64,000 bases of DNA from Klebsormidium nitens (taxonomy: Eukaryota; Plantae; Klebsormidiophyceae): contig DF237237.1 of assembly GCA_000708835.1 (NCBI GenBank), forward strand, positions 46,751 to 110,750, given 5' to 3'. The notes under the pieces were generated by a model. It was given only the letters and a program-made list of their open reading frames with translations. It made no database searches and was not told the origin of the DNA. Position numbers and translations under genes: made by a program. Positions 3,463 to 25,900 of the stretch are shown here, in pieces. Within the stretch, counting starts at the first letter, position 1. Each line of letters opens with the position of its first letter.

Positions 3463-6400
3463 ATGGCGGACAGGCGGAGTGCTCAGCTCTTCGGTGTCAT
3501 ACCCTTGCAGCTGCTGCTAATCCTGACCGTTGGGACGACTGGTGAGTGAAGTCTTTGGACTCGGCAGCAGAAGGCTGCCACTAGTTCTTTGCAGCTTCTA
3601 TGTATTGTAGACAATTCATATGTGTACTGAGCATCGAACGAGGAAGTGCACAAGAAATCATATGGGAGCATGAGCTAGATTCGTTCCACCCAAACAAATC
3701 ATCATCGCTTATCTAGGGACGTTTTCACATTTCTGCAGGAGTACTTGGCCAGCCCTGGGGTGATGCCATCTACAGCCAAACTTTTGATTCGGGCTTGGGG
3801 ACATGGAAAGTGGTTGGCATAACAGCTGAAGCGATTGCACAGTACGGCGTGAATGGCAACGTGTACAGTAACACTGGAACTTCAGCAACGCCCACCTACA
3901 GTTCCAGTGGCGGAAATAGTGGTGGCTTTATGGCCGCCTCCGATCCTGACGCCCCAACGTATGGCATCGATGGGATATATACTGGGGTCAACAGTACTCA
4001 GGAAGCTGACTTCTACTCTTTTGATGCTGGCGCTGATTTTGCTCCTACTTCGGGGGGCACAGCATCAGGCTGGCCCACAAGAGCGTATGAAGGCGTCTTG
4101 CAATTTGATTACAGGTTGAATGCTTCACCAGAGCTTCGGGCATACGCTGTTGCTCCTGGAAGAGTTTACCTGAGGGGCATCTCGTCGAACAACATTTCGT
4201 TCCCGTGGCCAGCAGCGGTAACCCAGCCCTGGCCAACATCAGCTTGGCAAACAATGACAATCTATCTGAGTGAGCAGGCTGGCTGGACCATGCAAACCCT
4301 CAGTGGCCCCAGCCAGAGCATACCAACACAAACGCAATTCAAAAGTGTCTTATCCCGCGTTACAAGTCTTCGATTACCCGGAGACTGGCTGCAAACTACG
4401 CTGAACGGGGCAAATCTATTGGATACCTCACAGATCGACAACGTCTACGTACGACAAGGTAATGCGAGCTTGTCAGGCAATCAACAAGTTGGTCCTTGAA
4501 AACCCTCTGATGGAGTCCTGCTTTTGACCAAAAGAGCAATTTTTTTAAATGCACCCAAGAGATGATTTTCTGATAGGTCAGCTGCCGATTGTTGCTGACT
4601 TTCATATCAAGTGCTGCTCCATGGTTCTGACCGGTTGAAGCCGTCTTGGGTTGCAGCTATTGAAAGTCCTTCGAGGTGCACACTGTCAGCATCAGGAGGA
4701 ACAGCTGGGGCAACTTTGACAGCGACATTGACAGCAAGATCGTACTATGGGGCGGTGCTAACAACTCAGGACACTTACAACCGATGGCAAATATCTTTCA
4801 CCTACCCGAATGGTTCAGCCGCGACCACCGTTGGCTCATTGACCTGGCTTGACTCCGGTGGAAGATACAGTTTCACCTACAGCTCCAACATCAGTGGTAC
4901 CCACCTGATGGTCGTTACATGGAATGGAGTACCCATCAGCGGCATGCCTCTGTCGGTGCCCATCTCACCTGGTAAGTTTCTTGCAAGCAGGCCACTGATT
5001 CTCAGGCCAGGCCAAAATGCTCGTCACAAGAGGCTGTGTACATGGTGTTCAAAAACGGTGCTTATTCAAGCAGTTTGTCTGAAAAACCTGAACCACTAAT
5101 TCTTGTTGTACCTGCAGATGCTATCTCTGCACCAAATTGTCTGGTTTTTGGAGCTGGCCTCTATCAGGCAATCGCCGGAGTGCAAAGTGCTATCTTCGTA
5201 CAAGCTGCAGACAAGTACAACAATGTGTACACGACAGGGGACACAAGCACCGCTGGGTTGCTCGGCTTGACTTTCAGTGGGCCAGCCACTTTATCATCGT
5301 TGAGTGCCTCCTATGTCAGCAATGGGACATACTCCGTTCCCTATATAGCTCTGACAGCGACCACGAACTCTGGCACAAACTACTCGATTGTCGTCAAGTT
5401 ACTTAACGCCCGGATAGGATCATACGCGAACACTCTGCAAGTTCTCCCAGGTATGCTTCTACCATTGCAAGTCGTGTTGCCAAACTACTAGTGTGAGTGG
5501 TCCATGAGGTCTCAGGCATTTGATAAACACTTCCTCGTACTCTTAGAGGAAGGAATCTGGCAAAGATTCTTTTCTTGACGTGACTCCGATAGAAGTAATT
5601 GATGTCTTTATTTTGCCTAAGTATGGCCCTCTCGTATGTTCCAGGACCAACCGCTGTGGACAGCGACAACGGTAAAGGTTGCCTTGCATCCGGCAGTGGG
5701 CTTTCAGCATCAACCGTGGGCACTATCACAACCTTCCAGATCTACGCTAGAGATGCCTACAACAATTTGCAAGTTTCTACTACCGACACGTTTACAGTGA
5801 AGATGACGGGTCAAGACGGTCTTACAGTAACCGGCATAAACATCACGAACTCGTCTCCGGGAATATATAATGTTCAATACATGACCACGGTTGCTATGGA
5901 CTACAACGTCAGTGTCTTCTTTGGTGGATCGAGAGTATTGGGCACTCAACCTTATGGTAGGACTCTAACGGTATCGCCAGGTGAGTTATCCAATGAGGCA
6001 GTCCTGTGAGCACTGTCATCCGTTCAGGCTTAATCTTATTCAATTGGTGGTCCTGAAAGAGCTGGTTCAGGTCGATAATTTCCAGCATGCAGCCTTCTAC
6101 TTCTGCAAGACACCGGCCCTCTTGACCGTCAAGACGTTTGCGTTTTGTACGTGCAGGCTCGGTCAGTGTACCCACTTCTCAAGCTGTTTGGACCAGTGGC
6201 CGTCCAGCAACATTCACAGCCGGGGCAACTCCAATCATAGTCGGCATCGTTCCGTACGACTCTTTTGGAAATACAATCGTATCTGAGAACGTTCCTGCCG
6301 GAACATTCACCGCTTATTATTACTCACAGAGCGACTCCGCAACTAACGTCAGCGCTCGCACCGGAGTGCAAGTCAGCAACCTGGGGGTGAATTTCAACAT

Positions 6401-9400
6401 TATTCGAGCTGGTCTTTACTGGCTAAAGATCGGTAACGGAAGCAACGACATTATTGGTTCTCCAATTTCCATCAAAATGGACGCTGGTGAGGATGACTCA
6501 CCGATTTGGTTTCCCTGCCCCGCTGAAGAATTTGAGCCGACTCAAGGTTTACTCTGTTTTGTCTGAAACGTCCAATCAATTCGTTCCCAAGTCAACGGTT
6601 CGTTTTTCAGGCGATGACAGATTGCGGGAAACCTTGCCGGTCACATTGACGATTGATCCAATAACAAATTTGAAAAGCTCACATGTGAAAAACGTGGCTC
6701 GTTTTATTTCGATGCAGGCGAAATAAGCTTGAGCACGAGCTCCATATCACCTGACTGCCCCTATACTGCGCAAGCTGGAAGTATCATCAAATTTTCGATT
6801 TTGGCACGAGACCAATATAGCAATCCCGTGCCAATGGATGGCGTACCGGGCGTAGCAGCATCCGTCGACGGGCCAGTCAGTGTGAATCTGACGATCACCC
6901 AGGATCCCAACTTTGCCGGCAACTATCTAGCTCAGATTAACGCAACAGTAGCTGGGATCTACATACTACGCGTTATTGCTTCTGGACAAGCTCTTCCAAT
7001 CGATCCAAACACCGTCTCGATCCTCCCAGGTAAACATTTTAACATGTTTTTGAAACACGTGTTCGGGACTTTTGTCGGAAGGCTTCTCAGCTGAGCTTAT
7101 GTGAGTGTTTATTTCTTGGTCTCGAAGACGAGCACTTCAACTCGCAACTCTTGAGGGCTTGTGGCTCTGCGAAGCAGAAAGTCTGAAACGTGAGAGCTGG
7201 TACCTCTTTGAACGTCTTTTGCTTGACATCGACTACAAGGCTCGGAGCAAACGGGTTGATGTAGTACCATTCGTTGTCACTCTCGTAGGCAGTCTCGACG
7301 CTGTGTGATCCGCATTGCTAGTACCTTACGTAAAGACAAGGATGTTCTCTGGGAGTAGAACCGCGCAAAATGAACGGTGAATTTTCTGGGCACTGACGCT
7401 GCTTCTGCTTCTTCATTGCAGCCGCGGTGAATCCATCTAACTGCGTCGCTTCTGGAAACGTCCTGGGGAGCACAATAGTGCAGACGCCATTAAGCGTCAC
7501 TATACAAAGCAAGGACTCTTGGAATAATAGTGTGACTAGTGGAGGCACCAACTACACATTCGTATCGTCTCCGCTGATGGCGTCCTGGGCATTTCTAGAT
7601 AATCAGGACGGAACGGTGACCCTCTCGTATACACCGGTTGTCTCGGGACAATATGTAATGCGAATCCTACAAGGAGGAGGACAAATTCCAGGCAGCCCTT
7701 TTATGGGACTCTACGTAGAGCCGGGTGAGGAGATCACTGGCCAGCAAGTTGTGCAAATACGACTGATTACCATATTCAGCTGGTTGATCGCCTCATCTTT
7801 TGTGAGCTTGATTCTTTGAAGAAAATGGTTTGGGTGCCTTGCTTCGGCAGGAAGGTCGGAGTTATTGCCCTGTGATGGACTCTGAAGTGATTTTGGTTGT
7901 TTCTCATTGCAGGATTCGTCGATCATAATTATGTCTATGGGGCCGGGGCTACTGCAGCTATTGCGAGCCAGACGACCTACTACTACGTCAAAGTTGTTGA
8001 TCAATGGAATAATCCATCCACCCGATTCAGCGACGCCAATAACGACGTAGACCCGAACGTAGCCACTGACCCCGATTCTATATGTTCATACTTCTCAATC
8101 TCCTTCTACTACGGCAACTTCAACACCGACGACTACCCGGGTGCCCCTGACAGCGTTACACCGACGGGAAATCTTGCGGAGTGTCTTGTCACCTATACCT
8201 TAACAGTTGCTGGAACTTATCAGAACTACATCTCGAACAACTATGCGGGCGGCTACCTTCTGTTGAATCTGATAGTCTCTCCAGGTGCGTTTGAGGATCC
8301 CAACTTACGTTACATACTTGTCAACGAGATAATCCACCAAGTTATTAGTCGTAATTTGGTGCTTATGTAATGCAAGCGGATTGCTTAGGTACTATAAAAC
8401 TCTCTTGTTTATTCAGTCTCTGGAGCTCGCATCTTCAACTTTCAGGGCTTGAATTATCCCGCTTCCTCTGGGTGCCATCCATAACCCCTGTATCTGACCA
8501 CAAAAGTAACTTTTTGTGCAATACTTTCTCGCATCTCAAAGCTATGACAGTGGAAGTATGTTTTATAAAGTTTCCTAATCTCCTTCCGTGGGGGTGGGGT
8601 TCCCTCTCGTCCAGTTCCTTCCCCTTCCCCCTCTCCATCCTTGTCACCGTCCCCTTCAAGAACCCCTTCACCTTCCCCTGCACCGTCATTGTCCCCCTCA
8701 CCATCACCCTCCCAATCATCAACACCTTCGACGTCTCCCTCCATCTCCCCGACCCCCTCTCCTTCCACGACCCCTGCGCCTTCTAGCAGCCCCTCAACCT
8801 CTCCTTCTCCCTCGCCTTCCCCTTCACCGTCGCACTCACCGATCCCTTCCACTTCTCCTTCTGTTTCGCCACTTCCTTCCTCCTCACCGTCCCCTTCCAC
8901 CACCCCCCCACCTTCTAGCAGCCCCTCTCGTTCCCCCTCTCCCTCTTCCACCCCCGCGGCATCCCCCTCCGCCTCCAGCTCGCCCGCCCCCTCCTCCTCG
9001 CCATCTCCTTCTCCCTCCGCGGCAGCGTCATCTAGCCCGTCCCCGTCTTCATCCTTCATTCCTCCATCACTTTCGCCCTCCCCCACCGCTTCCCCGTCAA
9101 GTTCTCCCTCCGCTTCACCCACCGCCTCTCCGTCCCCTTCCTCAATTCCTCCCTCGCCTTCAAGAAGTCCCTCTCCTTCTCCTTCTATCGCTGCCTCACC
9201 TTCAACCTCCCCAGCGGCCTCTCCTTCTAGTTCTTCCCCTGCATCTCCCAGCCCGTCACCGTCGTCTTCAGCTCTTTCCCCCTCCCCTTCCGCCTCCTCC
9301 TCCCCCGCTGCTTCGTCCTCTAGCTCGCCAGCACCCTCCTCCTCTCCTTCTCTGTCCCCCTCCCCTTCTCTGCCAGCCAGCCCTTCACCGTCCTCTTCGT

Positions 9401-12400
9401 CNNNNNNNNNNNNNNNNNNNNNNNNNNNNNNNNNNNNNNNNNNNNNNNNNNNNNNNNNNNNNNNNNNNNNNNNNNNNNNNNNNNNNNNNNNNNNNNNNNN
9501 NNNNNNNNNNNAGCCAGCCCTTCACCGTCCTCTTCGTATCTTCCCCCTTCCCCTTCCGCCTCGCCCTCCGCTGCTTCCGCTTCGAGCTCGCCAACGCCCT
9601 CCTCGTCCCCCTCCTCCTCCCCCTCTCTCTCTCCCTCGGCTGTTCCGCCAGCCAGCGCTTCGCCATCCTCTTCGTCTCTTCCCCCTTCCCCTTCCGCCTC
9701 CTCCTCCCCCTCTGTTTCCCCTTCTAGCTCGCCAGCACCCTCCTCCTCTCCCTCTCTTTCTCCCTCGCCTTTTCCGCCGGCCAGCGCTTCGCCATCGTCT
9801 TCCCCCGTTCCCGCTTCCCCTTCCGCCTCCTCGTCGCCTGCTGCTTCCCCTTCTAGCTCCCCCGTTCCCTCCTCCTCTCCTTCTCCCTCTCTTTCTCCTT
9901 CACCTTCTCTGCCGGCTAGCGCTTCTCCCTCAACTTCGGCCGTCCCCCCCTCGCCGTCGGCTTCAATCCCACCTTCCACTTCGCCGGCATCATCCCCATC
10001 CCCTTCGCCGCCTAGCATTCCTCCCTCAGCTTCTCCTTCTCCTTCGCAATCCCCCACAGCCTCTTCACTCCCTTCTGCTAGCCCGTCCCCTTCTAGCTCT
10101 CCCGCTTCGTCTCCTTCGCCCTCCCCTTCAAATCTCCCCGCTTCAGCCAGCCCGTCCCCGTCAGCATCCTCTGTTCCCCCTTCTCCGTCCGCAAGCCCTC
10201 TGGCCTCGCCTTTCCATTTGTCGTCACCCTCCCCCTTTCCTTCACCTTCCTCCTCCACCATTACCGCCCCATCACCGTCGCAGAGCACCTCACCGCCTTC
10301 TCCCAGCCCTTCTCCTTCTTCATCATCCAGCCCCGCTCCTTCGCCGCAGCCCACCCCTTCCAGCTCTCCTTCTCCCTCTCCTCCCCTCCCCCTCGGCCTC
10401 TCCGTCTCCTTCCTCCGTTGCCCCTCCCCAACCCCCCCACTGCCCTCCCCTTCCCCCGCCCCATCCCCACTGGCTGTCTCTCCTGCCGCTGCTCCCACAG
10501 GGACGGACGGCTACAAGTACTTGCCCACTGGGCCCGGCTTCACGGCCGCCGTGGCGGGCCAGACGGCCACCTTCCAGCTCAGCGCGCGCGACCTGTATGG
10601 CAACGCCGCCCCGCTGGGCGCTCTTAATCTGACGGCCTATTTTGTGCCCAACAACACTGTGGCCTTCAATATGAACGTCACGTCATCCACCGTCACCGTG
10701 ACGTACAAGATCAACGTAGCTGGCTCGTATAGTTTCCGGCTGCTGAGGAACGGAGGCAGCATTTACAACGGCACTCTCAACGGGCTCACCGTCAATCCTG
10801 GTAAGCGATGGCACCGTCAAAGACGCAGGTGGTTCCAACATATAAGATAAATTGGTACGACGGTTCTGGCAGAACGATGTCGAAACAATCAACAATCAAA
10901 TGCTTCAATTTATGTATCTTTAAAGTTCATCACTGTCTGCACAAATGGAACGCCGAAAGCTTCTCTTTTTATGTATCACTTGTCTTGCAGTGAACTGAAG
11001 GAGAGTTTGTTTTTGTCTGCGCAGCTGCGGCTTACGTGACCAAGTTCAGCGTTGCTGGCGCTGGGCTCAACACGACGATGGCGGGCACCGCGACGAGCTT
11101 CCAGATCCAGGCGCGCGACGTGTACGGCAACCTGGCGGCCGCGGACCAGACGCTGCTGGCGGCCCGCCTCGTGTCGAGCGCGGCAGCCGTGGTGCCGACC
11201 GTAACGGTGGTGGCCGGCTCTGTGGGGCTCTACAGCGCGGCGCTGACGGCCACCGTGGCGGGGCAGTACAACCTGTCCGTCACCTACAACGGAACGCTCA
11301 TTGCCGGAGCCACGAGCCCGCTGCTCAAAACAGTACTGCCCAGTAAGCCCACAGCAATCGGAAATGGTCTCCGATTGTTCTGCATCAAGTCGAGGGAAAA
11401 ACAAGCGTGTAGCATCTGCAGTTGACAGCTCCGCAGGGAAGAATTGAAAGACCACTTCACCGATGAAGGGATCTGAAGTGCCGTCTCGTATGAAAATCTG
11501 ACATTCTCGACTTCTTCTGCTGCTAGGCACGGTATCCGCCCGGCAATGCTTTGCATATGGGGCGGGCATTAGCGGGGGCCTAGCCGGCGCGAACCTGTCG
11601 TTCACGGTGCAAGCCGCGGACCAGTACGGCAACGCCATCACGAGCGGCACGTATCTGTTCTCGGCGGCCATCAGCCCCGCCGTCAGCAGCAGCCTCACGC
11701 TGACGGCCTCCGCGGCCGGGGTGGCGACGGGCAGCTACAGCATCTCGCAGGCCGGCACCTACACGCTCACGCTCGCGCTCAACGGGACCACCATCAACGG
11801 CGGACAGGCATACAGCATTGGCATCGGACCATGTGAGCAGACGGCGCTCGATCAGAGGGCATCACCCGATTCTGAATGCAACCACTCAAAGTCTTCCTGT
11901 CGGAGAACTTCTGCAAGAAGACGAACTGGGCGACTCCCGCCTTATTCATCAAGTCGATTCGCGTGAGTGTTTGAATCTGAAATACAAGGCATCGGCTTAA
12001 ATAGAGAGAACGTTTTGAACGGTCAATTTCAAAAGGGAGCTTCTCGGATTGTTTGTATGGTCAAACTTGTGCGACCTCCCAACAGAGCTGGCAGCTTGCA
12101 AACCAAAAGCCTGCCGCTCGCTTGAGGTACCAAGACTCATCCGGATATTCGTGCCTTTCGTTTCAGCTGCTGTGAGCCCCGCCCAGACGACTGTGAGCGG
12201 CGCGGGGCTGGCCAGCTCGGTGGCTGGCGTGGCGGGCGTGGTGGTGATCCAGGTGCGCGACCAGTACGGCAACACGCTGCAGGGCGAGCAGGCGCAGCTG
12301 TCGGTTGTGCTGCGCAGCCTCGCGGGCGGCAGCAACCTGACGGCTACGGTGACGGCGGTGGCGGGCAGCACGGGGCAGTACCAGGCTAGCCTGAGCCCCA

Positions 12401-15400
12401 CCGTGGCGGGGCCGTACAGCGCCGAGGTGCGCTACAACGGCACGCTCGTCGGCGGGGCCACCGCGGGGACGCCCAAGACGGTCACGCCAGGTACGGGCGG
12501 GCCGCGATCTTTCTTCCCCGACGCAAATGTTGATTCTTAGTCTTCGAAGGCTTTTTGATTTCTTAGAAACAAGGTAATGTTACTCTAGTAGACGGACGGC
12601 ATTCTCATGTTGATTGGAGAATGCCAGTCTGGCTCCAAAATGGCCCATCAAGGCACAATTCAGCGACCCGCGTTGCACAGTGCTTTCGTTGCTCCTCGAT
12701 CCATCATCGTTCCGTCTTGTGCAGGCCCCGTGTACGGCCCCGCGTGCACGGTGAGCGGCTTGGTGAGCTCCGCGGTGGCGGGCGTGGCCCAGTCGCTGCG
12801 CATCCAGGCCGCGGACCAGTACGGCAACGCACAGACCAGCGGCAGCCCCGCCTTCGCGGCGGCCTTCACCCCGGCCGCGGGTACCACGTGGACGGTGATG
12901 AGCAACAACGACGGCAACAGCACCTTGCAGTACCGCCTCACCGTCGTCGGCAGCTACAAGATGGCGCTTACGCTCGGCGGCAGCCCGGTCGCAGGCAGCC
13001 CCTTCTCGCTCACCGTCACGCCAGGTGAGGGCCCACGAGGCGTCTGGTGCTCTCAACTTTTCTGAAATGTACCGAATTTGATTGTTAACAAAACTAATGA
13101 GCCCTTGACTTGCAATACTTCTTCTCAACTCAACCCACTACGTGGTACTCCTATCATTCCAACAATTTCAAGATAGTCATAAAGCAAAGCGTCACCTGCC
13201 TCTGTCTTGCACTCGTTAAGATCTGGACGTCAACTACGAGCACTTAACTTTTCGGTTTCATTCAGAGACGAGCTTGCCCTTCCAAGGACCCTACCAGCTT
13301 GATCATTGAAGCTTGACGCGAGGCAAGCTCGAGTGACTGAGCGAGCTCGCGGCTCCCTCATCGCTCGACTCACTCCCGGCCCCTGTTCTCCGTCAGGCCC
13401 TGTGTCTGCTGCCCAGTGCACGGCCAGCGGGAGCGGTCTCTCCACCGCCACCGCGGGCGTGGCGGCCACGTTCAAGGTGCTGCTGTACGACGCCAGCGGC
13501 AACGCCGTCTCCAACGCCGCCCCCTCCAGCCTGGCCGCCACGCTGACGGTAAGCGGTGTGCCGACCGTGATGGGGAGTGCGCACTCGGACGACGTGGCGG
13601 CCAACGGGGTGACGGTGTCGTACGTGGTCACTGTGGCCACCGCGTACACGCTCACCATCACGTGGCAGGGCCAGACCATCAGCGGAGGGGTCACCACCGT
13701 CACCGCAGGACCGGGTGAGGGGCCAAAGCGGGCGCTCGACTGTCTGTAGCCTGGTGAAACATAGCCTTCTGCAACTTTGTCAGGTTCCACATCTCTTCCA
13801 AAGAGAACCTTTTTATGACTCTTGAAAATCTACTGGAGACGGACCAGACGACGAGGGACTCACAAGCTTGCCCTGGTTTTCGAGGGCTGCTTTGCCCCCG
13901 GAACTTGAAGCACCTCTTTGGAAAAGATGACTGTTTCGAAAGGTCGATTCCCTCAAGGAACGGCCTTCGCCAGCTTTTTCGTGGGGCCTGCTCGCAGCCA
14001 ATCAGCCGAGCACAGCTCATGCAGCGCTGAATCCGACAGTGAGTGCTTGCGCTGGTGAAAAGCTTCAGCAATCAGATGCGCCCGCGCAAGCTGACTGTCT
14101 TCGTCGATTGTGCCCCAGGCGCCGCGTCTGCCTCGACCAGCACTGCTACGGGCACGGGCCTGTCCGGCGGGGTGGCCGGGAGCAGCCTGGCCTTCACGCT
14201 GCGGGCGCGCGATGCGTTCAACAACGCCCTCTCCACCGGGTCCCAAAACTTCAGCCTCAGCTTTGCGCCCGCCACCCCGACGACCGCCAGCGTGACTGAC
14301 AACGGGGACGGCACCGCGGGCGCTACGTACTCGTTCAACGTGGCGGGCAGCTACACGGCACGTCTGTATCTGGCCGGTGCCGAGCTGGCTGCAAGCCCCG
14401 TCGCCGTGCTTATCTCGCCAGGTGGGCATGGTGTGGGAGCATGCGCTCTTCGGCCAACGAGCCCCTACATGGGGTTGTCTGACCAGCCGAGCACGTTCTT
14501 GTTCAGAAGCGCATTTGATGTACATCATCATATTAGTCCCTGCTACGTTTATCGTGTTCCCGAACTTCAAAGTTCCTTCAGATCGTTTGCATAACCAACC
14601 ATCACGAGCTGACGACACGTCCTGTTGCGCATGGGTGGTGCAGGCGCTGCTGTGGCGGGCCAGTCGAGTGCCACAGGGGAGGGCCTCTCGTCGCCCAGCA
14701 CGGTGGCCGCCAACTCGATCTTGGTGCAGCTGCGCGACAGCTACGGCAATGCGCTCGCCAGCGGGGGCGACAGCGTCACGTACAGCGTGGCGGGGCCGTC
14801 TGCGGCGGTGAAGCAGGCCGTGGTTTATGTCGGCGCGGGGGCCTACTCGACGTCGTACACCGTGTCGGGGCTGGGGGCGTACACGGTCACGGTCAGCGTC
14901 AACGGAGCACAGCTGCCGGGGAGCCCCTTCAGCGCCACGGCCACCGCCGGTGAGCGGCTCGCGGGCGGCTGTCAGCACTGCCGGCCGCGATATGCGTCGG
15001 CCGTTTGAACTTCGGTGGACAAAGTCCATGCAGGGTTTAAGCTAACCCCTACCATCAAATATTGCTTTATGACCCAGACCACCGGGTTTTATCGAAGGTT
15101 ATGCTAAACCAGGTTTAGACGCTGCGCGCGAGCAAAGGTTTCTTCAACTTCTTGTCCAAGCTGATTTGCCGACGAGAAGTTGAGACCATTCAGCAGAACA
15201 CACCTGCAATGATCAATTGGATGTGTGCCAGCATGAAAGGGCGCTGCAGCGTTACGCTTTTCTGCTACTTTCCAATGCTCATGTCAAGCTAGGCGCACTC
15301 ACCAATTACTAGGAGCACGCGCCTGACGCTACAATGCTGTGTGTGCCCCTTCAGGCACTGCCCGCGCCGCCAGCTGCAGCGGCAGCCTCAGCGCGGCCAC

Positions 15401-18400
15401 ACTGGTGGCGGGCCAGTCCGGGCTGCTCACGGTGCAGGCCAAGGATGCCAGCGGCAACGCGCTCTCCAGCGGGGGCCTGGCCTTCAACGTCCGATTCAGC
15501 CCCACCCCAGCGACTGGCCCCGCCCTGGCCACCACCACCACGGACGGCAACAACGGGGCATACACGCTGCCCTTCCAGATCAACGTGGCCGCCACCTACT
15601 CTGTCGCAGTCACGCTGTCGGGGACGGCCATCGCAGGGAGCCCCTTCGCACTCACCGTGCTGCCAGGTGGGGGCAAGGGCTCCAGAATGCACCCATGAAA
15701 GTGGACTTATGTCTTCTTAGCCATGATTCCTGATTCTAGACCTCCTGATCCTGTTTTCAAGGCTTGAACTTTAGCTTCTGCAATGTGGAAGCATGCTGAG
15801 GTGATCATTGAAGTCAGCATTGGGCCCTGCATCCATTAGACCAACTGCCCCTGGTGTTTCCCTGTCTGTTGCTGAGCCGCGTGTCTGTGTGCAGGTGTGG
15901 TGAGTGCCTCTTCCTGCACTGCGGCCGGGAGCGCCATCTCATCTCACACGGCCGCCAGCAATGACTCGCTGGTGGTCACGGCCAAGGACAGCTACGGCAA
16001 CACCGTCACGGCCGCCACCGATGCGGGGGGGCAGCCCATCAGCTTCACGGCCACCCTGGCGGGCCCCGCGGGGAGCAGCAGCACGGCGCTGGCGGCCACG
16101 CCCAACCAGGGCCTGTACAACGCCACGCTCAACATGCAGGCCGCAGGCACCTACAGCTTGCGCGTCTCCTACCAGGGCACCAACATCAGCGGCAGCCCCT
16201 TCGGAGTCACCGTTTCTCCAGGTGGGCACCTCTGCTGTCACTGCTGGACACGAGGTCAACAAGAGGACAGCATGATTGGTCCTCCATATTTGCATGTCAA
16301 GCTGGAACCAGAGACTCAGGAAATTGAGCTTTTTATATTGGACATCTTGCCTTGAATACTGGGACAGGATTCGCTAGGACCGACCACATGTTCATCTCTA
16401 AGAAAGAGGGACTTGGTTGTCTGCTGTCCGGTCCACCTGGACGAACCTGGAAGACTCACTTGTTCCTCTTGTCCCTTTGGTCCAGGCCCGCCCTCTGTCG
16501 CGTACAGCATCCTGTCTGCCGCCATGAATCCAGTGGTGGCGGGGGCGCAGGGCGCCCTGGTGATTCAGGCGTACGATGCATTCAACAACAAGCGCACCGC
16601 AGGGGGTGACGGTTTCAGAGTGACCATGACCCTGGGCAGTGCCTCCTTCAGCGGCACGCCCGCCGACAACGGCGACGGCACCTACACGCGCGCCTTCAAC
16701 AGGACGGCCGCCGGCAGCTACACCATCCAGGCCACCTACAACGGGGCTGCCTTCAGCACGCTCGCCGCTCCGCAGATCGTCGTGCCAGGTGCGCAGTGCC
16801 CAGAGGACGTACAATTGCATTTTATTGTGAGCCCGTACTTGGAGGCTGAGCTGATACAAGATCCGAGGCTGGTTCTGCCTCATGCCTTGCACCGGTTTCT
16901 TCTCCCAGCATGGATTCATTTCAGTATGAGCGTTGACTAACACCTGACTCGGCTCTCTGTTCCTTCTTCCCAGCTGACGTGTCGGTGAGCCAGAGCGTGG
17001 TGAGCGGCACTGCCCTGAGCAGCCAGGCCGCAGGCACCGCGCGCGTGCTGCAGCTGCTGGCGCTGGACGCGTTTGGCAACGCCATCACGGCGGCCACCAC
17101 CGCCAGCAGCGTGCCCATCATCTTCACGGCCACCGTCGCCGGCCCGCAGGCCCTCACTGCGCTGCTCACTGCGGCGGGGGGCGGCGTGTACCAGGCCACC
17201 ATCACCCTCACGGTGGCGGGGACGTACTCGCTGGCGGTGGACTACAACTCGCAGCTCATAGCGGCCAGCCCGTACCCCGTCGTCACAATTCCAGGTCCGA
17301 TGAAGGACCTCTGCCGCTCCCTTGTGCCACAACAGCCTGTGTTGCAGGTCGACAAGCTGACTCATGTTGTGTTCGGCCAGGCGTTTTGAGAGCTCCAAAA
17401 TTGACGGTTGCTCGTTGCTGCCAAAAGAGTTCGCCTCGGTACATATTCCCTGTTACGTTGCACTCGACCTCTAAGCTCTCCTTCCAAAGCTCAACGGGCG
17501 TCTTTCGCATCCGCAGGCCCCATCTCCGCGGCAGGGTCGTTGTTGGCGCTCCCCGCTGCGAGCGTGGTGGCGGGGCAGCCGTTCAGCGTGCTGGTGACTG
17601 CGCAGGACGCGTACGGCAACGTGCAGCCCGCGGCGGACCCCGCCTTCCTGGTGCTCCTGCAGCTGGCCACCACGGGGGGCGGGCCCCCCGCGTACACCGG
17701 CGCGGGCGTCTACAACTACTCGGCCGCCTACAGCGCGGCCGGCCTCTACACCGTCACCGCCACCTATAACGGCGTGCCAGTCGGCTACAACTCGCTCATC
17801 CTGTCCATCGTAGCCGGTGAGGGGGGCACCGCCCGCACCCCGGCTCATGGGGCATGGACCAGCGTGTCTGGAGAGGACCATCAGTTTTCGTGTCTGCAAG
17901 CACTGCGTGGCCATTTAGTCGCTGGACGACGCTGACGATCTTGTTCCCATCTCCACAAGGCAACGACCGTCCATCCCTGGTTAGCTTCAGCCGCCTGCTG
18001 ACTGCTGCATGCGGTGGTGTGCGCAGGGTCGCTGTACCCGCCGTCGTGCGTGGTGCGCGGCAGCGCGCTGGCCGACCTGGCGACGGGCGCCACCCGGTAC
18101 CTGTCGGTCCTGGCCACGGACGCGTACGGGAACGTGCTCAACTCGCAGTACGACGCGAGCAGGAGCACCATCCAGTTCCAGCTGGCCATCAGCGGCGCGG
18201 AGACGCGCAGCACGGCGCTCGTGTACGCGGGCACCGGCCTGCACGAGCAGAGCTTTACGCCGCTTACCGTCGGCACGTACGGCCTGGCCATCACCTACCG
18301 CGGCGTGGCCGTCGCAGCCAGCCCCTACACCATGACCGCCTCCGCCAGTGAGCGCACCGAGCCGCCTGCCGCTCCGTGCAGAGCAGGCCAGACGCCGAAA

Positions 18401-21400
18401 TAGTACAGCTGACCGAGGGAAAGACGGGCGGGGCTTTGGCTGGCAGCCGGCCACCAAGATTGGCACCAGTTGTGCAGCCATATTGAAAGATACTGCCGTC
18501 CTTGCTTAAAAGTAGAGTCCAATTTTCTAGGTGAAGCACAGCTGGCGCCTGAGACCGCTGCTCCTTCCCTGACCACGGCCGGCTTCTCGTGTTTGCAGAT
18601 GACGTGTCAGCGGCACAGTCCATCGTGACTGTGAACGGGCCGACGACGATGCAGGCGGGCCAGGTGACGTCGCTGACCATCCAGGCGCGTGACGCGTACG
18701 GCAACCCGAAGCCGAGCGCGGCCGCGGGCTTCCTGGTGCTGCTCAGCCTGGACGGGGCCACCAGCGGCGGCGCGCCGACGTTCGTGGGCAACGGCACGTA
18801 CGTGTACAGCCAGAACGTGACGCAGCAGGGCGACTACGTCATCCACGCCACTTACAACCAGCAGGACATTGCTGGCAGCCCGCTGCAGCTGCACGTCGTT
18901 GCAGGTGAGGCACCGCCCGCAGGGACCCAAAGAACTCATCTAGAGTGCCAGCAAACTTCCGGAGAGATTAGTTGTGATGCACACCGCTTCTCAAAGCTTT
19001 TAGACGATTCGGCAGACGAGACCCGCCGTCGTGGCAACTTTGTCAGCTTGATAGGGTTGTTACACTTGAGCGTGAACAGGGTCCGATCGAGACGACCAGA
19101 GCCCGATCAGGCTCGGGCAAATGCCCTTTTGTTTACATGGCCCAAATTTTGTAGCTGCCGGAGGCCCCAATTTGGGTCGGGGGCTCGGGCAGATGTTGGG
19201 TCGGGTCGTGAACTGCCCAACCCGAGGGGCATCGGATTGTGGGCAACCCAATCAAGATTTCTGACAGGCTGAGGTCAGCCGAAGGTCCAGCTGATGGGGC
19301 TTCGAACGTAAAGTCTCCAGTGTAACAACCCTAAGAGTTTCTGTGTGCGTGCAGGCCCCGTGGTTGCGTCGGCGTGCTCGCTGTCCGGCAGCGGGCTGCA
19401 GTCGGCTGCGGCGGGCACGCCGCTGACGGTGGACGTGCAGGCGGCCGACGCGTGGAGCAACCCGACGGGCGGCCTGGTGGACGCGCTGGGCGTGGCCGTC
19501 GTGTTCCAGCTGGCGATTAGCGGGCCATCCGCGGTGAACCAGGTGTTTGCGGTGCTGCCCGGCAAGCAGGAGGCCACGTTCACGCTGACACGTGTCGGAC
19601 CGTACACCGTGGCCGTGACCGGCAGCAGTACCGCCACAAACGTTCTGGGCAGCCCCTACCAGATTACCATCTTCCCAGGTGCGCGCCCCGTGAGATACTC
19701 AGAAGTGCAAAATGATTAGGCTTTGTAACAAAGCTGGTCTGGGGCTTTTGTCGTCGTGCGGCTTGGAACTCTTGGTTCTGCACGTCCTGGACAACAAGCT
19801 TCTCTCATCTGCAATGACGAGTCCATCCGGTCCTTGGCAGAAGTCTTGGACGGCTAACTCGTTGCCCTGGTCACGCTGCCCGTCTGAGGACTTCGATCAC
19901 GTCAAATTGATGGCAACCGCGCATCGTGTTGCATTGCCGCATGACTGACACGCTTCTCTCCCTCCCCCTCTGTGCGTGCAGGGTCCATCGCCGGCAGCAA
20001 GAGCAGCGTGAGCATCCCTGCGCTGCCGTCCCTGGTGGCGGGCACCGCGAGCAGCGTGCAGATCCAGGCGCGCGACGCGTACGGCAACGCGCGCGTGCAG
20101 GGCGGCCAGGGCTTCACCGTCTGGCTCACCGCGGCGGGGCAGACCGTGAACGGGGCGCCCACCGACAACGGCGACGGCACCTACACCTACCCGCTCAACC
20201 TCACGGTCGCCGCCGCGTACAGCATCAGCGTCACCTACAAAGGCACCACCGTGCCCAGCAGCCCCTACACCCTCACCGTCCTGCCAGGTCAGGCCAGCAG
20301 CAGCAGCTCCACGCCACACATGTCTAGCCCGTCTGCTTTGCAGTAGCGGGTTGGAGTTTCGTGAAGCAGCATATGAAAGCAGCCTCGCCCCAAGCTGTTT
20401 TCCAAAACTGGCGCAGCTAACCCGCCATGCTTCCTCGGGTGCAGGCGTCGTGTCTGGCCCCGCCAGCACCGCCACCGGCAGCGGCATCGCGTCTCGGAGC
20501 GCCGGCGACGCCGCCCACGTGGTAGTGACGGCGCGGGACGCGTTCGGCAACCCGGCGACCGCGGCCACGGACGCCGGGGGGCCGGTGTTCTATACGTACA
20601 CGCTGAGCGGGGCGCTGGCGCTTACGGGCAACCTGACGGCGGCAGGGAGCGGCAGTTTCACGCTGGACTTGCCGCTGGTGCAGGCCGGCAGCTACAGCCT
20701 GGCCATCGCACTGCGCAACCAGAGCGCCATCCAGGGCAGCCCCTTCGCCGCCATCGTCTCGCCGGGTGAGCAAGCTGGGACGTACATACACAAGGTGACG
20801 CCGCTGCAGGTCTTTGCAAGGCGTTCTGTTTGTTCTCCTAAACGAGCCGCTTCTCGCTGAGAGTCTAAACGTTGGCTCTTGGAAACAAGCAAAGAGAGCG
20901 CTTTGTCAAGAAGGGAACAGCTGTGTCATTGCCTGCTCAACTTCTTCTTTTATTCTCTTCTCCAGTCTTTTTCGATTCATTCTTCTGAGATTTTAAAAGG
21001 TTTGGCTGAGCGTACGTGCAGGCGCGCCGAGCCCGACGACGAGCCGGCGGCTGCTGGTGGTGGCGGGCGTGCCGAGCACGACGGCGGGCGTGCCCATCGT
21101 GTTCACGGTGCAGGCCGAGGACCGCTTCGGCAACAGCGTCACCGGCGACCAGGCGCAGCTGACCGCGCTCGTGTCGGACGGCGGCAACGCCACCGCGGTG
21201 GTGCCCATCGCGTATGCTGGGGGGGGCCAGTACAGCACCAGCTTCGCCACGACGCGCACGGGGCCGTACATCCTGCAGGTCGTCATGGCGGGCCAGAACG
21301 TCGTCAACAGCCCATCCACCTTCACCGTCCTTCCAGGTGCGCGCGCACGCACCTCATTTGCTTGCACCACCTGGCAGCTACGAGAGAAGTTGCGCTCACT

Positions 21401-24400
21401 GCTCTGAGCTTGCTTTGGCTTCTACTCTAGCTTTTACTGTACTCTCATTCCCCCTCTTATACCGCTGGCCGGTGCAGGCGCGCTGGACGCGAGCCGCACG
21501 ACGATCAGCGGCCCGGAGCTGGTGAAGGGCCCAAGCGCGTGGACGCTGGCGACGCAGGCCACGCACATGAGCAGCCTGCTCATCACCACGTTCGACCAGT
21601 TCGGCAACCAGCGCGCGCCCGGCGGGGACGCCCTGCTCGCGTCCGTCACCATGCTCGCGCAGGGGGGGGCCACGCCCACGGGTGAGCAAGCGTAGCAGGC
21701 CTGTGGCATTTCGGAGTTGAGCAGTACAAGAAAAGCACCTCATTTTGATTAGTTCGAGCAAGTAAACCCAGAATTCGAGACTCCTCCCTTGACGTTTGCT
21801 TAAGACGTTCTGCTGCACGCGTGCTGCATTGATCCATATCAATCTGAGCACTACGTCAGCCTACTCCGCCTCTTTTCCCAAAGGTGCCTGCTGAACAAAA
21901 CCGGCTACAAATTCAGAGAGCACCAGCCTTTCTGCATTAGGTAGGCGACCAGCTGGACAAGAAGTCACTCCCCTTTCGTTTGCCTCCCCTGTTTCCAGTG
22001 ACTGCGGTGGACAACGGTGACGGCAGCTACTTTTTGCGTTGCGTGGCCCCTTCCCCCGGCAACGGCGTCCTTAACGCGTCCTTGGCCGGGCGGCCCCTGC
22101 TCTTCGGCAGCAGCCCCCTGCTGGCGTGGACCGTGGCGCCCCCCGCGGCCGTGTCCATCTCCGCGCTCTGGCCCCCCGCCGGCCCCGTCACCGGCCAGAC
22201 GGCCATCACCGTCACGGGCCTCAACTTCTTCGCTGCGGACGTGCTGACGTGCCAGTTCGGCGGCGGCGGCGCGGCCAGCACCGCGGGCAGCTTCGTGAAC
22301 TCGACGGCCGTGGTGTGCCCCTCCCCGCGCGTGGGCGCGCCCGCGCAAGTCAGCCTGCTGCTCACGCTTGGCAGCAACGCCAATGGGCCGCAGGCTTCCT
22401 TCATGGGCTTCCGCTTCTATGGTGAGCGCCCCACCCTCTTCGGCCCATCTCCCTGCCTGCTATTCCATGAACTCTTTCCCGTCGTTGGCACAAAGTCTCC
22501 GAAAACTACCATAGATTGGGCTTGTCAGATCATGAGTACCCTTCCACTTGCTCGTGCTGCCTGACCTTTCCGCCCCTGCTCCTTGCAGCTGCCATTTCCA
22601 TCACGGCCGTCTCCCCTGCGTGGGTCAGCGCTGCGGGCGGCGACGTGGTGACCGTATCAGGGACCGGCCTGGTGGCGACGGGCGCGGCGTGGTGCCGCTT
22701 CACCGACATCTCCGCCGCCGGCACCACCGCCGACCCGGGCCTCGTCTCCGGCCCCAACGTCGCGCCCGCCGCGACCGCGCTTAGCATGGCGACCGTGAGC
22801 AGCGGCGGTAGCGTGTCGTGCAGTGTGCCGGCCATGGCGGGCGCGAGCCTGGTGGCGGTGGACGTGTCGCTCAACGGGCAGCAGTTCAGCGCGGAGCGGC
22901 TGCCGCTGCCGCTCGTGGCCGACTTCGCGCCGAGCGCCAGCAACAGCTCCTTCACCGTCGGGCCCGGCCAGGCCGTCGCCCTCGACACCGCCACCACCGC
23001 CAAGGTCGCCTTCGGGAACGCCACCTTCGCCGGCATCACGCAGGTGCGCCGCCGCGCAAGGACTTGCGTCGCGTTCTACCGCCAAGCAAGAGGCACCAAG
23101 CTTCAGTGCAAAAGCAACCTGGAAGTAAAACGGTACCGTCGAAGAGCCAGGCTGCAAGGTCGGTTTATTTCTCGCTTGCTGTGCCGTGCTTCCTTGTCCG
23201 CCGTGTTGACAGTCACGCTCTTCTGCGGCGTATGCAGGCCCCTCTCCACGGCTCTACGGCTGTGTCGGGCAGCGTGGTGCGCTACACTCCGGGCGCCAAC
23301 TTCTTGGGCTCCGATTCCTTCACGTACTCCATCGCCGACGGCCGCGGCAGGACGGCCACGGCGGTCGTGAGCATCGCCGTGCTGCCGCCGCCGCCCCACT
23401 TCGCGGCCGTGCCCGCCAGCATCGTCGCGGACGAGGACGTGCAGTTCCCGGTCACCGGGTGAGCCACCGCCGCGCCGAGCCGCATCGCACGTGAGGGTGA
23501 ACAGCCTGACAAGATTTGAGGTGCTGTTCTTGAGGTTTGACTTGCAGAAGCTTCCCTTTTCTAAGCTTAAGCTGGTTTGAGGCCCTGACTCTGGTGTGCG
23601 CTCGCGTGCAGGACGCTAGACGGCTTCGTGCTGCAGTACCTGGACCCTGCCGCGCCCCTCTCTGTGTCCGTCTCCGCTGCGCACGGCCTCTGCTCCCTGG
23701 CCCCCGCGCAGAGCGCTCTTTGGGCGGCCGCCGCCCTTCCCCCCGCGGCCGCTGCCGCCATGACCACCAAGGGCCCGCTCACCTTCAGCGGCACGGTGGC
23801 CACCATCAACTCCGCGCTCCAGGCCGTGCGCTGCACGGGGTGAGCCGACCAAAGGGCAGGCGTGCCCAGTAAGCGTGCGGATCAGCAGTGGAAGATCGAG
23901 GAAGACGTTGAAGCGTGGTGTTGCTTTGTTGCATCCACTGAGAGCGCTGCGTGCGCTATAATTACGGGTAGCGATCTCTATCCTCCCGTTTATCCACGTC
24001 TGAAGGGCTCTCTTGTGTTTCTCGATGCTCACGGGTTCTCGCGGCGGCTGCAATTGCAGGTCGCAGTACTTCAACGGCAACGACACGCTGACGGTCAGCG
24101 TGACCAACTCTGCCGGCGCGGGCGACTTTACGCTGGTGCCCATCTACGTGCGTGCGCGCAACAACCCGCCCTTCGCCACCGCGCCCTCCAGCGTGGCGAT
24201 CAACGTGACGGGCTCCGGGGTCATCCCCGCGGCGGGCAGCGTCGGCCTGGCCAACGGCGCCGCCACGGGCGTGCGCATCCCGGGGGTCGCACTCGGGGAC
24301 CCCGACAACGCGGACACCCGATGTGAGGAGCACTGCGCAGGAGCTGCCTGGCGTGCATGGAAAGTCAGAGGCAGGGGAGGCGTATAAGCATGTTTCTTTG

Positions 24401-25900
24401 GCAGTGGAAAGGGCAGTGTTGGACTGCACCCGTCAGCCAGGTCTCGGCTGCCGTCGTTGTGCCATACCACATCCAGATTGTCGCTCGCACCCCTGCTGCT
24501 GACCGCTCTCCGTGCTCTCCGCAGTGGATGGCCGCCGGTTGACGCTGTCGGTCACGCTGTCCGCTGCCAAGGGCACTCTCAGTGTGGACGTCACCAGCGA
24601 CGTCCTCGTGACGGCTCCCGCCGATACGCCTGTTGCGGCCAGCGGCCTGACGCGCGTGCAGGGCGGCAGCCTGGCTTTCACCGCCACCGTGGCGGCGGCC
24701 AACGCGGCGCTGCTCACCCTCGTCTACGACCGGCAGCCCGTCAACGTGAGCCGCCCGCCGTAGCGACACGCCGCACGGCTGCCTGGCATGCTTGCTTGCA
24801 TTCTCTTTTAATCAGGAGCTTGGCTCCGGGGTTCAAAGGAAGCACCGAGACCCTCTCAAATGGAGTTTGCCGTTGTTGACCGTGCTCGTGCTGTGTTCGT
24901 ACGTGCAGGGCACGATGAGCAGTGCGGGCGACCTGGTGGTGGTGGCGGTGTCGGACGGCGGCAACTTTGGGTGCGAGCTGCTGTGCGGGGCCGGCGCGCC
25001 GCTGCCCATGGCCGCCACCGCCAGCATCGCCATCGTCGTCGCAGGGGCCTCCCCCGACCCCTACGACCCGCTCCAGCCCAGCAGTGAGGGCCCGCGCCAC
25101 CTTTCGTTGCGTGGCCACAAAACGCCAGGCCTGCGACAAATTCCCCTGGCCCTTTCCAGCCTTCAACGTCGAGACCCATTGTTGAGTATAGCCTCTGTCA
25201 ATTCCTGTCGTGGACAGGCGCTTCTGCGCGTGCCGTCCTGGCAGGTATTTGCCGCTGAAGCGTGGCTGCGTGTGTGCAGGCACGCCTGCGACGGTGCTGG
25301 CGGGGTCGCTGGGCGGGCTGGGCCTGATCGGGCTGGCCGTCATGGCCGCGGTGGGCGGCCTGGTGTACGTGGCCGTGCGGCGGCACCGCGCGGCGCTGGA
25401 CGGCGCGGACGACGACGACGACCAGGCGTACGAGGCGGCGCGCGTGTACAATCCGCTCTGGGTGCCGTCCGCGGGGGGCGACCACGCGGCCGGCTTTGTG
25501 TCCACGCCCAACCCGCTGCTGCTGCGACAGAGGTCCGCCGAGCGAGAGCAGTGAGTCGCGCGCCGCACCCTGAACCTCCACTAATCAGTCGTACCGTTCT
25601 GCTCTATCAGCCTGTTAGAGCAAATCAAGGCTATGCGTTCAGCAGAGATGTGTTGGACGGATCTCCGCAAATATGATCATCTGGACCCTAAGCGCTCACT
25701 CTGTAATACCGTTTTCTCTCTTGCCCCCTTGTTTTCGTTCTCTGCTTACAAACTGCGTGCGCAGGTTGGCCGCCATCGACCGCGAGATTGCGCACCGGGC
25801 AGACGCCAGCAGCCGGGCTGCTAGCCGCGGAGGGCCGCGCGCCCCGCCGCCGGGAGTCAGACGAGGCAGTAATGGGGCCACGCCGGCCCAGAACCAATGA
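3463..25900 (+). CDS. Giant (about 4,500 aa) type-I transmembrane protein: SP + laminin-IV-like + 27 filamin-type Ig repeats + Ser/Pro shaft + 2 IPT/TIG + cadherin-like/Big modules + TM + cytoplasmic tail
   Basis: ATG 3463 gives signal peptide MADRRSAQLFGVIPLQLLLILTVGTTG (exon 3463-3541). About 38 GT-AG exons are in continuous phase: 3739-4458, 4657-4971, 5118-5450, 5645-5980, 6157-6486, 6718-7029, 7422-7724, 7913-8284, 8615-10800 (contains the gap), 11025-11342 through 21022-21336 (18 repeat exons), 21478-21681, 21999-22421, 22589-23043, 23238-23458, 23612-23839, 24060-24322, 24525-24745, 24909-25083, 25280-25550, 25765-25900. Repeats carry filamin signatures (QARDxYGN, DNGDGTY, I.GSPFxxxVxPG) and many N-x-S/T sequons. 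Confidence 0.85.
3739..4458 (+). other. Laminin-IV (laminin B)-like N-terminal domain exon of the giant protein
   Basis: The pattern YEGVLQFDY...W.TMTIYLSE..GW...T...F.SVLSRVTSLRLPGDW...IDNVYV resembles the laminin domain IV consensus. Recognised by eye, no HMM run. Confidence 0.6.
8615..10500 (+). repeat. Ser/Pro-rich (SPSP/SSSP) hydroxyproline-rich-glycoprotein-like coding repeat, about 600 aa
   Basis: Pyrimidine-rich coding strand translating to (SP)n with A/T interruptions. The subrepeat GCCAGCCCTTCACCGTCCTCTTCGT occurs on both sides of the gap. Confidence 0.9.
9402..9511. other. Assembly gap (110 N) inside the Ser/Pro exon
   Basis: Run of N. The Ser/Pro reading frame differs on the two sides, so the placeholder length is not the true length. 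Confidence 1.
22130..23043 (+). other. Two IPT/TIG domains of the giant protein
   Basis: ISALWPPAGPVTGQTAITVTGLNF...LTCQFG...G.FVNSTAVVCPSP and ITAVSPAWVSAAGGDVVTVSG...CRF...VSCSVP...VDVSLNGQQFS are typical IPT/TIG patterns. Confidence 0.8.
25280..25400 (+). other. Single transmembrane helix with basic stop-transfer
   Basis: TVLAGSLGGLGLIGLAVMAAVGGLVYVAV followed by RRHR. Confidence 0.9.

Follow-up and report, generated by a model that had tools for sequence, protein, structure and literature searches.

FUS1 and GEX2 of green plants carry filamin-like Ig arrays and a transmembrane (TM) segment, and their ectodomains consist entirely of seven Ig domains (bioRxiv 10.1101/2021.09.03.458930). 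At the RNA level, pairing of conserved complementary boxes promotes use of the distal of two alternative acceptors in Drosophila Nmnat (PMC2724269). The window, a 64,000-nucleotide stretch of DNA from the soil alga Klebsormidium nitens, contains a gene that can be compared with both systems. What is new is an HRGP-type shaft that behaves as an all-or-none splice cassette. We lean towards a model in which one gene with two acceptors, chosen between by an RNA duplex, encodes a membrane tether or receptor with two reaches. The first-pass annotation recognized no described family, and no published description of the gene or its architecture was found in the literature searched, whose coverage is incomplete; the annotation overlooked the known FUS1/GEX2 layout of green plants, in which a filamin-type array lies outside the cell and is joined to a TM segment.

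The exon-by-exon model describes a single gene of 38 exons running from the ATG at 3463 to the TGA at 25900 without internal stops (Table 1). The length of a 7,467-nt RNA contig equals exons 10-33 plus two shared nucleotides, in agreement with the model, and exons 2-38 are colinear with ortholog L008. The predicted topology supports a type I membrane protein. The signal peptide and single TM helix annotated earlier were both recovered, as a hydrophobic leader retained in orthologs L001 and L005 and as one candidate helix, in calls that rest on hydropathy and conservation only. Profile searches of the spliced protein were run per exon rather than on the joined sequence.

Table 1. Features of the gene, with positions in the window and the basis of each assignment.
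Feature	Position	Strand	Basis
Exon 1: start codon and signal-peptide-like segment, 26 aa	3463..3541	+	hydropathy 1.89; in-frame stop upstream
Exon 2: laminin-IV (L4)/CBM-like beta-sandwich head	3739..4458	+	predicted fold, sequence searches
Exons 3-9: distal array, 7 filamin/GEX2-type Ig repeats	4657..8284	+	exon model, Pfam
Branch-point-like CTRA motif	8575..8579	+	inferred branch point; position in four lineages
5' arm: conserved intronic G-rich 12-mer (GTGGGGGTGGGG)	8588..8599	+	intron comparison
Optional Ser-Pro cassette, proximal acceptor 8615	8615..10500	+	RNA contigs; orthologs
3' arm: conserved CCCCATCCCCAC	10459..10470	+	-42..-31 of distal acceptor
Distal (internal) acceptor and Ig8	10501..10800	+	RNA contigs; four lineages
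Exons 11-30 (5' part): Ig9-Ig27, proximal filamin-type array	11025..22140	+	Pfam; exon model
Two IPT/TIG domains, exons 30-31	22141..23043	+	Pfam
Exons 32-36: Big_9/cadherin-like membrane-proximal modules	23238..25083	+	Pfam; exon 34 feature matches
Single Gly-rich transmembrane segment, then RRHR	25294..25377	+	hydropathy; orthologs
Cytoplasmic tail, exons 37-38, 102 aa	25378..25900	+	intron 25551-25764; orthologs

The annotated laminin-IV-like head was borne out by structure prediction. The exon 2 match to Pfam Laminin_B was weak (E 0.007; score 16.6, below the cut-off of 22.4), and the predicted model (pTM 0.81) had as its best structural matches the L4 domains of perlecan (Z 16.4) and laminin alpha-2 (Z 15.2), with CBMs (CBM11/22-like sandwiches) ranking after L4 and atlas TM values of 0.61-0.67. 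The head is thus predicted to have the L4 beta-sandwich fold. Its identity is 12-14% to animal L4 domains and about 30-36% to bacterial ones, and its closest sequence relatives are bacterial surface proteins carrying Laminin_B. The tail retains 57 of 60 residues alongside 21 synonymous changes, includes an invariant run of 52 residues, an acidic patch and YNPLW and NPLL motifs, as the earlier mention of a motif-bearing tail had anticipated, and NPLW and NPLL are invariant in three lineages. Such strong constraint is consistent with an inward partner. These features bear on another reading, a microbe- or glycan-sensing receptor whose head binds foreign polysaccharide outside the wall while the conserved tail drives uptake or signaling: the head fold is common to CBMs, the nearest sequences are bacterial, and the tail YNPL fits the tyrosine-based endocytic pattern. 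We regard this reading as improbable, given that the head, at 61-75% against L008, ranks with the better-conserved of the distal domains and that the protein is without a kinase or other signaling domain.

The 27 filamin-type Ig repeats, split 7+20 by the Ser-Pro segment, agree with the earlier count. One phase-1 exon encodes each repeat in exons 3-9, where GC3 is low (about 0.5); GC3 in the proximal array is 0.84-0.99. Pfam Filamin and/or Ig_GEX2_N, Invasin_D3 or Big matches were obtained for 25 of the 27 repeats, several of them below the gathering score, and Pfam gave none for Ig7 or the split Ig27. The two TIG domains (E 1.8e-11 and 6.4e-7) and the cadherin-like modules (Big_9/Cadherin_5) previously noted were also detected by Pfam, and the cadherin-like feature matches in exon 34 are a lead only. 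No VWA match was found by Pfam on any scanned exon. None of the branches in the tree of Ig repeats was starred, and we therefore propose no history of duplications. Searches for Ig8 homologs with 236-750 aa and scans of metagenomes found nothing.

Ig4 and three repeats further along score above the Ig_GEX2_N cut-off, as might be expected of a FUS1/GEX2-type adhesin of gametes or zoospores acting in cell-cell recognition in a wall-less stage, possibly a sign of cryptic sex. The filamin-like Ig arrays and TM segment of FUS1 and GEX2, the GEX3 homolog reported in K. nitens and the faster divergence of the distal Ig array (46-70% against L008, compared with 61-86% for the proximal part) point the same way. 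However, FUS1 and GEX2 ectodomains all have seven Ig domains and the algal one is four to five times larger with extra domains, and the gene is transcribed in runs of several studies (conditions coded). A gamete or zoospore adhesin is therefore unlikely, and the tether or receptor with two reaches remains our preferred reading.

RNA contigs show that the Ser-Pro shaft between Ig7 and Ig8, roughly 590-630 aa long, is an optional cassette, present or absent by acceptor choice. The exon 9 donor at 8284 is common to both isoforms and joins either 8615, which includes the cassette (runs X5 and X9), or 10501, which removes the cassette together with the assembly gap (runs X5, X6 and X9; two studies). 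These joints come from contigs rather than reads and have short sides of only 25-27 nt; both are GT..AG, are missing from the DNA run and have unique flanking 30-mers, so a genomic deletion or repeat artifact was rejected as the source of the skip junction. No single RNA contig spans the whole long isoform. A 13025-11079 back-joint and loose ends at 11079/11131 are explained by the similar exon 26. The roughly 600-aa (SP)n segment of the first-pass annotation is thus present (592-593 known residues) but not constitutive, and its total of roughly 4,500 aa describes the long form, since a shaft-less form of 3,875 aa is also made.

The Ser-Pro segment is 45% S, 32% P and 10% A (S+P+A+T 91% over 592 residues) and contains 126 SP dipeptides, 129-nt units, one SPPP (a count made before a homopolymer-rich stretch was corrected), one Tyr and no Lys. 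It is Ser-rich (P 32-35%) and not a classical poly-Hyp helix, and full extension is therefore an upper bound. The gap at 9402-9511 lies inside the cassette; its 110 N do not keep the reading frame, and its real length has to be divisible by 3. No RNA contig crosses the gap inside the segment and the reads carry repeat variants missing from the assembly, so the gap hides at least one further unit; for the same variants, a mere 27-nt overlap of duplicated ends is unlikely. Three single-C omissions in the assembly (10382, 10387 and 10425) produce a false non-Ser-Pro stretch. Two separate genes across the gap, the outcome against which the earlier annotation had asked for a check, were rejected, because RNA contigs splice 8284 to 10501 over the gap and L008, which has no gap, continues through an in-frame 1,731-nt cassette with an open 576-aa Ser-Pro segment.

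It is very unlikely that the long form is splicing noise or passenger exonization of a pyrimidine-rich intron end, with the short form alone of importance. An intron-retaining RNA contig is present, 10501 starts Ig8 in phase 1, in the regular manner of every other Ig exon, and cassette length differs between lineages, all of which such noise would accommodate. Against it, every relative (L003, L004, L005 and L008) has a cassette that reads through in frame (237-576 aa read, no stops) with its composition kept, and at its start 22 of 28 residues are identical with only 7 of 21 synonymous sites kept. Both acceptors are kept in relatives, and the CAG/G context of the distal acceptor is the same in four lineages.

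Acceptor choice is where the two conserved arms come in. The intronic 5' arm, the longest word shared among the 36 introns compared, lies downstream of the branch-point-like motif and upstream of the proximal acceptor, and the 3' arm is complementary to it at 12 of 12 positions with one G-U. In all four lineages the A of the CTRA motif is found 10-11 nt ahead of the G-rich arm, at -37 relative to the proximal acceptor; CTRA occurs near the acceptor in 26 of 37 cases and not near the distal AG. Both arms are invariant in four lineages, which form two closer pairs and in two of which the halves are linked only by sample, and the synonymous sites of these lineages agree only about 45%. Within the 22-kb gene no site other than the 3' arm complements the 5' arm with one G-U or fewer, and the 3' arm stands at exactly -42..-31 of the distal acceptor in all four; synonymous shuffles placed such a complement within the final 60 nt at a rate of 0.1-0.4% (P 0.001-0.004). 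Four-fold sites at the 3' arm agree in 11 of 14 cases vs. 63 of 140 in Ig7-9. Four-fold sites upstream of the arm are also conserved (9 of 14), which protein binding or acceptor constraint could explain. The G-rich element is not coding, because its distances from the AG in different lineages do not differ by multiples of 3, and it had no match in Rfam. Together, the arms suggest that two conserved complementary segments flanking the spacer set acceptor choice through a long-range RNA duplex. The predicted duplex has -30 to -36.5 kcal/mol vs. -17 to -20 for the local partner, and its pair probability is 0.66 in the full fold of L008.

The same data can be read as one gene with the same isoforms in which a protein bound to the G-tract sets the choice, a weak acceptor working with a trans factor, and complementarity is a by-product of C-rich coding and a constrained distal acceptor. 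The proximal acceptor is the only one of 37 with a G run of at least 4, and this tract occupies the place of the usual pyrimidine tract (pyrimidine fraction 0.55). The C-rich cassette offers other pairing partners, one of them nearly equal (-29.1 vs. -30.0); the full-length fold of the window's own sequence favors the local hairpin, with a long-range probability of about 0; and the arms, whose core is invariant in four lineages, display no compensatory changes. We nonetheless consider the trans-factor reading doubtful in view of the unique complement, its fixed offset and the shuffle results, and because the third-position A's of the 3' arm pair with two U's of the 5' arm although CCA makes up only 10-20% of Pro codons.

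Under the duplex model, both acceptors would use one common branch point. Pairing between the G-rich arm and its C-rich counterpart, which lies about 1.9 kb downstream, would loop out the proximal AG and the cassette and place the distal AG about 40 nt from the branch point, yielding the short form; with no pairing, or where the local hairpin wins, the proximal AG would be used and the long form made. Hydroxylation and O-glycosylation would turn the spacer into an extended linker, and the distance at which the head is held would then differ between the forms: about 140 nm for the short one and up to about 330 nm for the long one at full extension. A lectin-like head on an Ig rod could then serve as a membrane-to-wall or membrane-to-substrate tether or receptor of two reaches, and the tail may bind a trafficking or cytoskeletal adaptor. 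The cell may in this way tune the reach of a sticky tip by splicing. More tentative, and clearly less probable than the gene-level model, is the wider proposal of a streptophyte two-length tether/receptor in which a conserved RNA duplex decides inclusion of the ~600-residue glycosylated spacer, possibly in a temperature-, water-status- or elongation-rate-sensitive manner. Spacer inclusion would then roughly double the reach of the head, and one gene could serve thin and thick walls, or the inner wall and the outer surface; no value for wall thickness was found in the literature searched. The gene is a concrete, conserved and transcribed candidate for attachment of the plasma membrane to wall or substrate without integrins in an early-diverging relative of land plants, and its complementary arms are an algal candidate for control of acceptor choice by an RNA-structure switch.

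Comparison with known systems places the protein beside several families. It shares with FUS1/GEX2 a predicted signal peptide, an extracellular filamin/invasin-type Ig array, a single TM segment (the leader and TM by hydropathy and conservation only) and Ig_GEX2_N matches. By the published definition it nevertheless falls outside FUS1/GEX2: it has 27 Ig repeats rather than 7 and also carries an L4 head, TIG and cadherin-like modules, a Ser-Pro spacer that is optional, and a conserved long tail. It extends the filamin-type extracellular arrays of green plants past the seven-domain gamete adhesins. Cytosolic filamins have an N-terminal calponin-homology region and no signal peptide or TM; here there are a hydrophobic leader, an L4 fold and a TM segment. 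The head has the predicted fold of perlecan and laminin alpha-2 L4 while scoring below the Pfam cut-off. Like Chlamydomonas mastigoneme MST1/MST3 (PMC11015965) and the sexual agglutinins (PMC2113723), the protein joins a Pro/Ser-rich segment to globular or Ig-like domains, in what would be a long surface fiber. It differs from these HRGP rods in that serine dominates the segment, which has an Ig array on either side and is included or skipped by splicing, and in that its anchor is a single TM rather than a PKD-like channel. A long Ser/Pro/Ala/Thr-rich segment with SP repeats in a predicted secreted protein is the pattern of chimeric hydroxyproline-rich glycoproteins; repeated Ser-Pro3-5 blocks with Tyr cross-link motifs, as in extensins, are absent from it. 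Dictyostelium SibA and integrin-beta-like receptors (PMC9197732) are likewise large type I proteins with a Gly-rich TM and two tail Asn-Pro motifs; the algal tail has NPLW and NPLL rather than two NPxY, and the extracellular VWA of those receptors has no counterpart on the scanned exons. As in Drosophila Nmnat and Atrophin (PMC2724269), conserved complementary boxes are found at the proximal one of two alternative acceptors or on either side of it; in the alga the 3' box is in coding sequence, the part that would be looped out is a 1.7-1.9-kb in-frame spacer, and the pairing is inferred.

The gene rebuilt from the window sequence comprises 38 exons on the plus strand, with all introns bounded by GT and AG, and encodes the single protein of about 4,500 aa proposed in the first-pass annotation. 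Outside the Ser-Pro segment the frame covers 3,875 aa with zero stops; the segment contributes 593 known residues and an assembly gap. One phase-1 exon encodes each Ig repeat, the last being divided over two, and the model confirmed 27 repeats, 7 N-terminal and 20 C-terminal to the Ser-Pro segment. Pfam matched 25 of them (Filamin, Ig_GEX2_N, Invasin_D3 or Big), and the top PDB match of one repeat was the Dictyostelium gelation factor. C-terminal to the repeats, two TIG matches and Big_9/Cadherin_5 agree with the modules claimed earlier, and hydropathy supported the proposed signal peptide and membrane helix as an N-terminal leader and a single Gly-rich transmembrane candidate followed by RRHR. 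The gene and its architecture are real. GC3 was 0.49-0.58 in exons 2-9 and 0.81-0.99 after the cassette, intron GC was 0.45 before the cassette and 0.54 after, and the GC3 step is also present in the orthologs. This step may mark two older genes fused, or a regional bias.

Coordinates of features in and around the gene (window positions, except where a contig is named)
Feature	Position	Remark
Assembly gap upstream of gene	2280-2299	20 N
Start and stop codons	3463, 25900	ATG, TGA
Head domain	3739-4458	
Exons 2-9	3739-8284	
Retained intron 9, RNA contigs	8256-8639	
Exon 9 donor	8284	
5' arm, G-rich 12-mer	8588-8599	intron 9
Proximal acceptor	8615	cassette included
Base difference	9353	T/C
Assembly gap in cassette	9402-9511	110 N
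Added C's	10382, 10387, 10425	
3' arm	10459-10470	coding
Start of X6 contig	10498	
Distal acceptor	10501	cassette skipped
Region after cassette	10501-25550	
Match to part of exon 12	11562-11804	skip at 11645-11730
End of X6 contig at exon 33 donor	23839/24060	
Tail site just ahead of VYNPLW (intron in two orthologs)	25440-25445	
Tail intron, ortholog contig L011	4866-5110	minus strand
RVT_1 fragment, ortholog contig L003	2494-3375	

The exon 9 donor was joined to the proximal acceptor in contigs of RNA runs X5 and X9, and to the distal acceptor in X5, X6 and X9, which represent two studies. Both joints are GT..AG and neither was present in the DNA run, X1. Apart from shared letters, the short side of each joint measured 25-27 nt, which is usual for contigs broken off at a branch; the flanking sequence was unique. 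The length of one X6 contig, 7,467 nt, is that of modelled exons 10-33 with two shared letters. The two junctions place the gene halves in one transcript and make the Ser-Pro segment an optional cassette; almost certainly this is one gene with two splice forms. Two separate genes across the gap, the outcome named earlier as contrary, are contradicted by the distal junction, and the segment of about 600 aa exists but is not a fixed part of the protein.

Intron 9 was retained in RNA contigs of X5 and X6; these represent either unspliced precursor or a third outcome for the exon 9 donor. The X6 contig seems to stop exactly at the exon 33 donor, which suggests another branch, either a retained intron or an alternative splice. 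In X1, part of exon 12 is also matched by a separate contig that skips 84 nt and has flanks unrelated to the gene, a partial copy of that exon elsewhere in the genome.

The assembled length of the cassette gap leaves its flanks out of frame, so the true length is a multiple of 3. No contig from the sequencing runs spanned it. Reads hold repeat variants missing from the assembly, and the gap therefore probably hides at least one further unit. RNA contigs added single C's at three positions, restoring the Ser-Pro reading there; their omission from homopolymer runs is a probable assembly error and fits the platform, since the published assembly was built from 454 and Illumina data (PMC4052687). 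The base difference within the cassette, seen in the DNA run as well, is also a probable error.

Homolog searches made exon by exon, together with contig look-ups, found three further lineages, the four grouping as two closer pairs; in two lineages the halves were joined by shared sample alone. The whole gene lay gap-free on one JGI contig (L008 with L011), where exons 2-38 were colinear at 46-86% identity and exon 1 gave no match above the cut-off. The cassette of L008 is in frame (1,731 nt, 576 aa), and an open cassette also follows exon 9 in the other two. That the cassette is a mere passenger is an unlikely alternative. The tail was the most constrained part, with 57 of 60 residues identical, an invariant run of 52 residues and 21 synonymous changes. 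An intron directly before the tail VYNPLW motif in two orthologs is absent from the window gene and is a loss or gain. A reverse-transcriptase fragment lies about 4 kb upstream of one ortholog.

Complementary arms flank the cassette choice. The 5' arm is one word kept in intron 9 across lineages and the longest shared word among 36 introns compared; such a G run occurs at only 1 of 37 acceptors, the proximal one. Splice choice by a protein bound to this G-tract is a rival to RNA pairing. The 3' arm pairs with it at 12 of 12 positions (one G-U) and is the only such complementary site across the 22-kb gene. Its position relative to the distal AG, -42 to -31, is exactly the same in each of the four lineages, and so is the context of that acceptor. 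When the sequence was shuffled synonymously, 0.1-0.4% of trials put such a site within the last 60 nt. Agreement at four-fold sites there was 11 of 14, against 63 of 140 in Ig7-9. A branch-point-like CTRA precedes the 5' arm by 10-11 nt in all four lineages; no CTRA was found near the distal AG, nor a further AG between it and the 3' arm. Pairing of the arms would bring the distal AG to about 40 nt from CTRA, a distance close to the 35-37 nt between the proximal AG and the same motif. Duplex energies were -30 to -36.5 kcal/mol vs. -17 to -20 for the local hairpin. Full folds favoured the long duplex in L008 (0.66) and the local hairpin in the window, and the arms showed no covariation across the four lineages, so the duplex is a step that we infer. 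Rfam gave no match. A long-range RNA duplex probably controls acceptor choice. The same layout of complementary elements occurs in Drosophila Nmnat, proven there by compensatory mutation (PMC2724269).

The head gave a weak Laminin_B match in Pfam, and perlecan and laminin alpha-2 L4 domains ranked first against its predicted model (pTM 0.81), ahead of CBMs, which upholds the laminin-IV-like reading. Only 35 matches were found among 1.84 billion representatives, and those inspected, the algal ortholog aside, resembled surface proteins of bacteria; many of them carry PEP-CTERM-type ends. Atlas neighbours were mostly Bacteroidota, Acidobacteriota and Verrucomicrobiota. Judged from these relatives, a bacterial origin of the head is possible. 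A head of this kind might bind glycan, and a receptor sensing microbes is an alternative role.

At about 4.5 nm per Ig domain and 0.31 nm per residue, the Ig array would span about 120 nm. The cassette could measure no more than 180-195 nm; with proline making up only a third of the segment, this figure is an upper bound. The tail may bind an adaptor, its YNPL matching a tyrosine-based sorting pattern. In secreted proteins of the green lineage, Ser-Pro runs become extended linkers once hydroxylated and glycosylated (PMC11015965), and by that established behavior the cassette would form one; composition ruled out an extensin. The protein may be a tether or receptor of two reaches, membrane-to-wall or membrane-to-substrate. 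We lean slightly toward this whole picture, with glycan-binding head, adaptor-binding tail and duplex-set splicing.

Literature searches of incomplete coverage found no paper on this gene or on an HRGP shaft removed by splicing, in line with the earlier remark that the architecture was not recognised as a described family. The gene and its spliced-out shaft are apparently undescribed, the Ig adhesin and HRGP parts being individually of known kinds. A FUS1/GEX2-like adhesin of gamete or zoospore is a further rival: the protein would work like such an Ig adhesin lengthened by an HRGP shaft, but departs from the published definition, in which the ectodomain is entirely 7 Ig domains (bioRxiv 10.1101/2021.09.03.458930). 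With SibA it has in common a Gly-rich transmembrane segment and paired Asn-Pro motifs, although it has neither a VWA domain nor a true NPxY.
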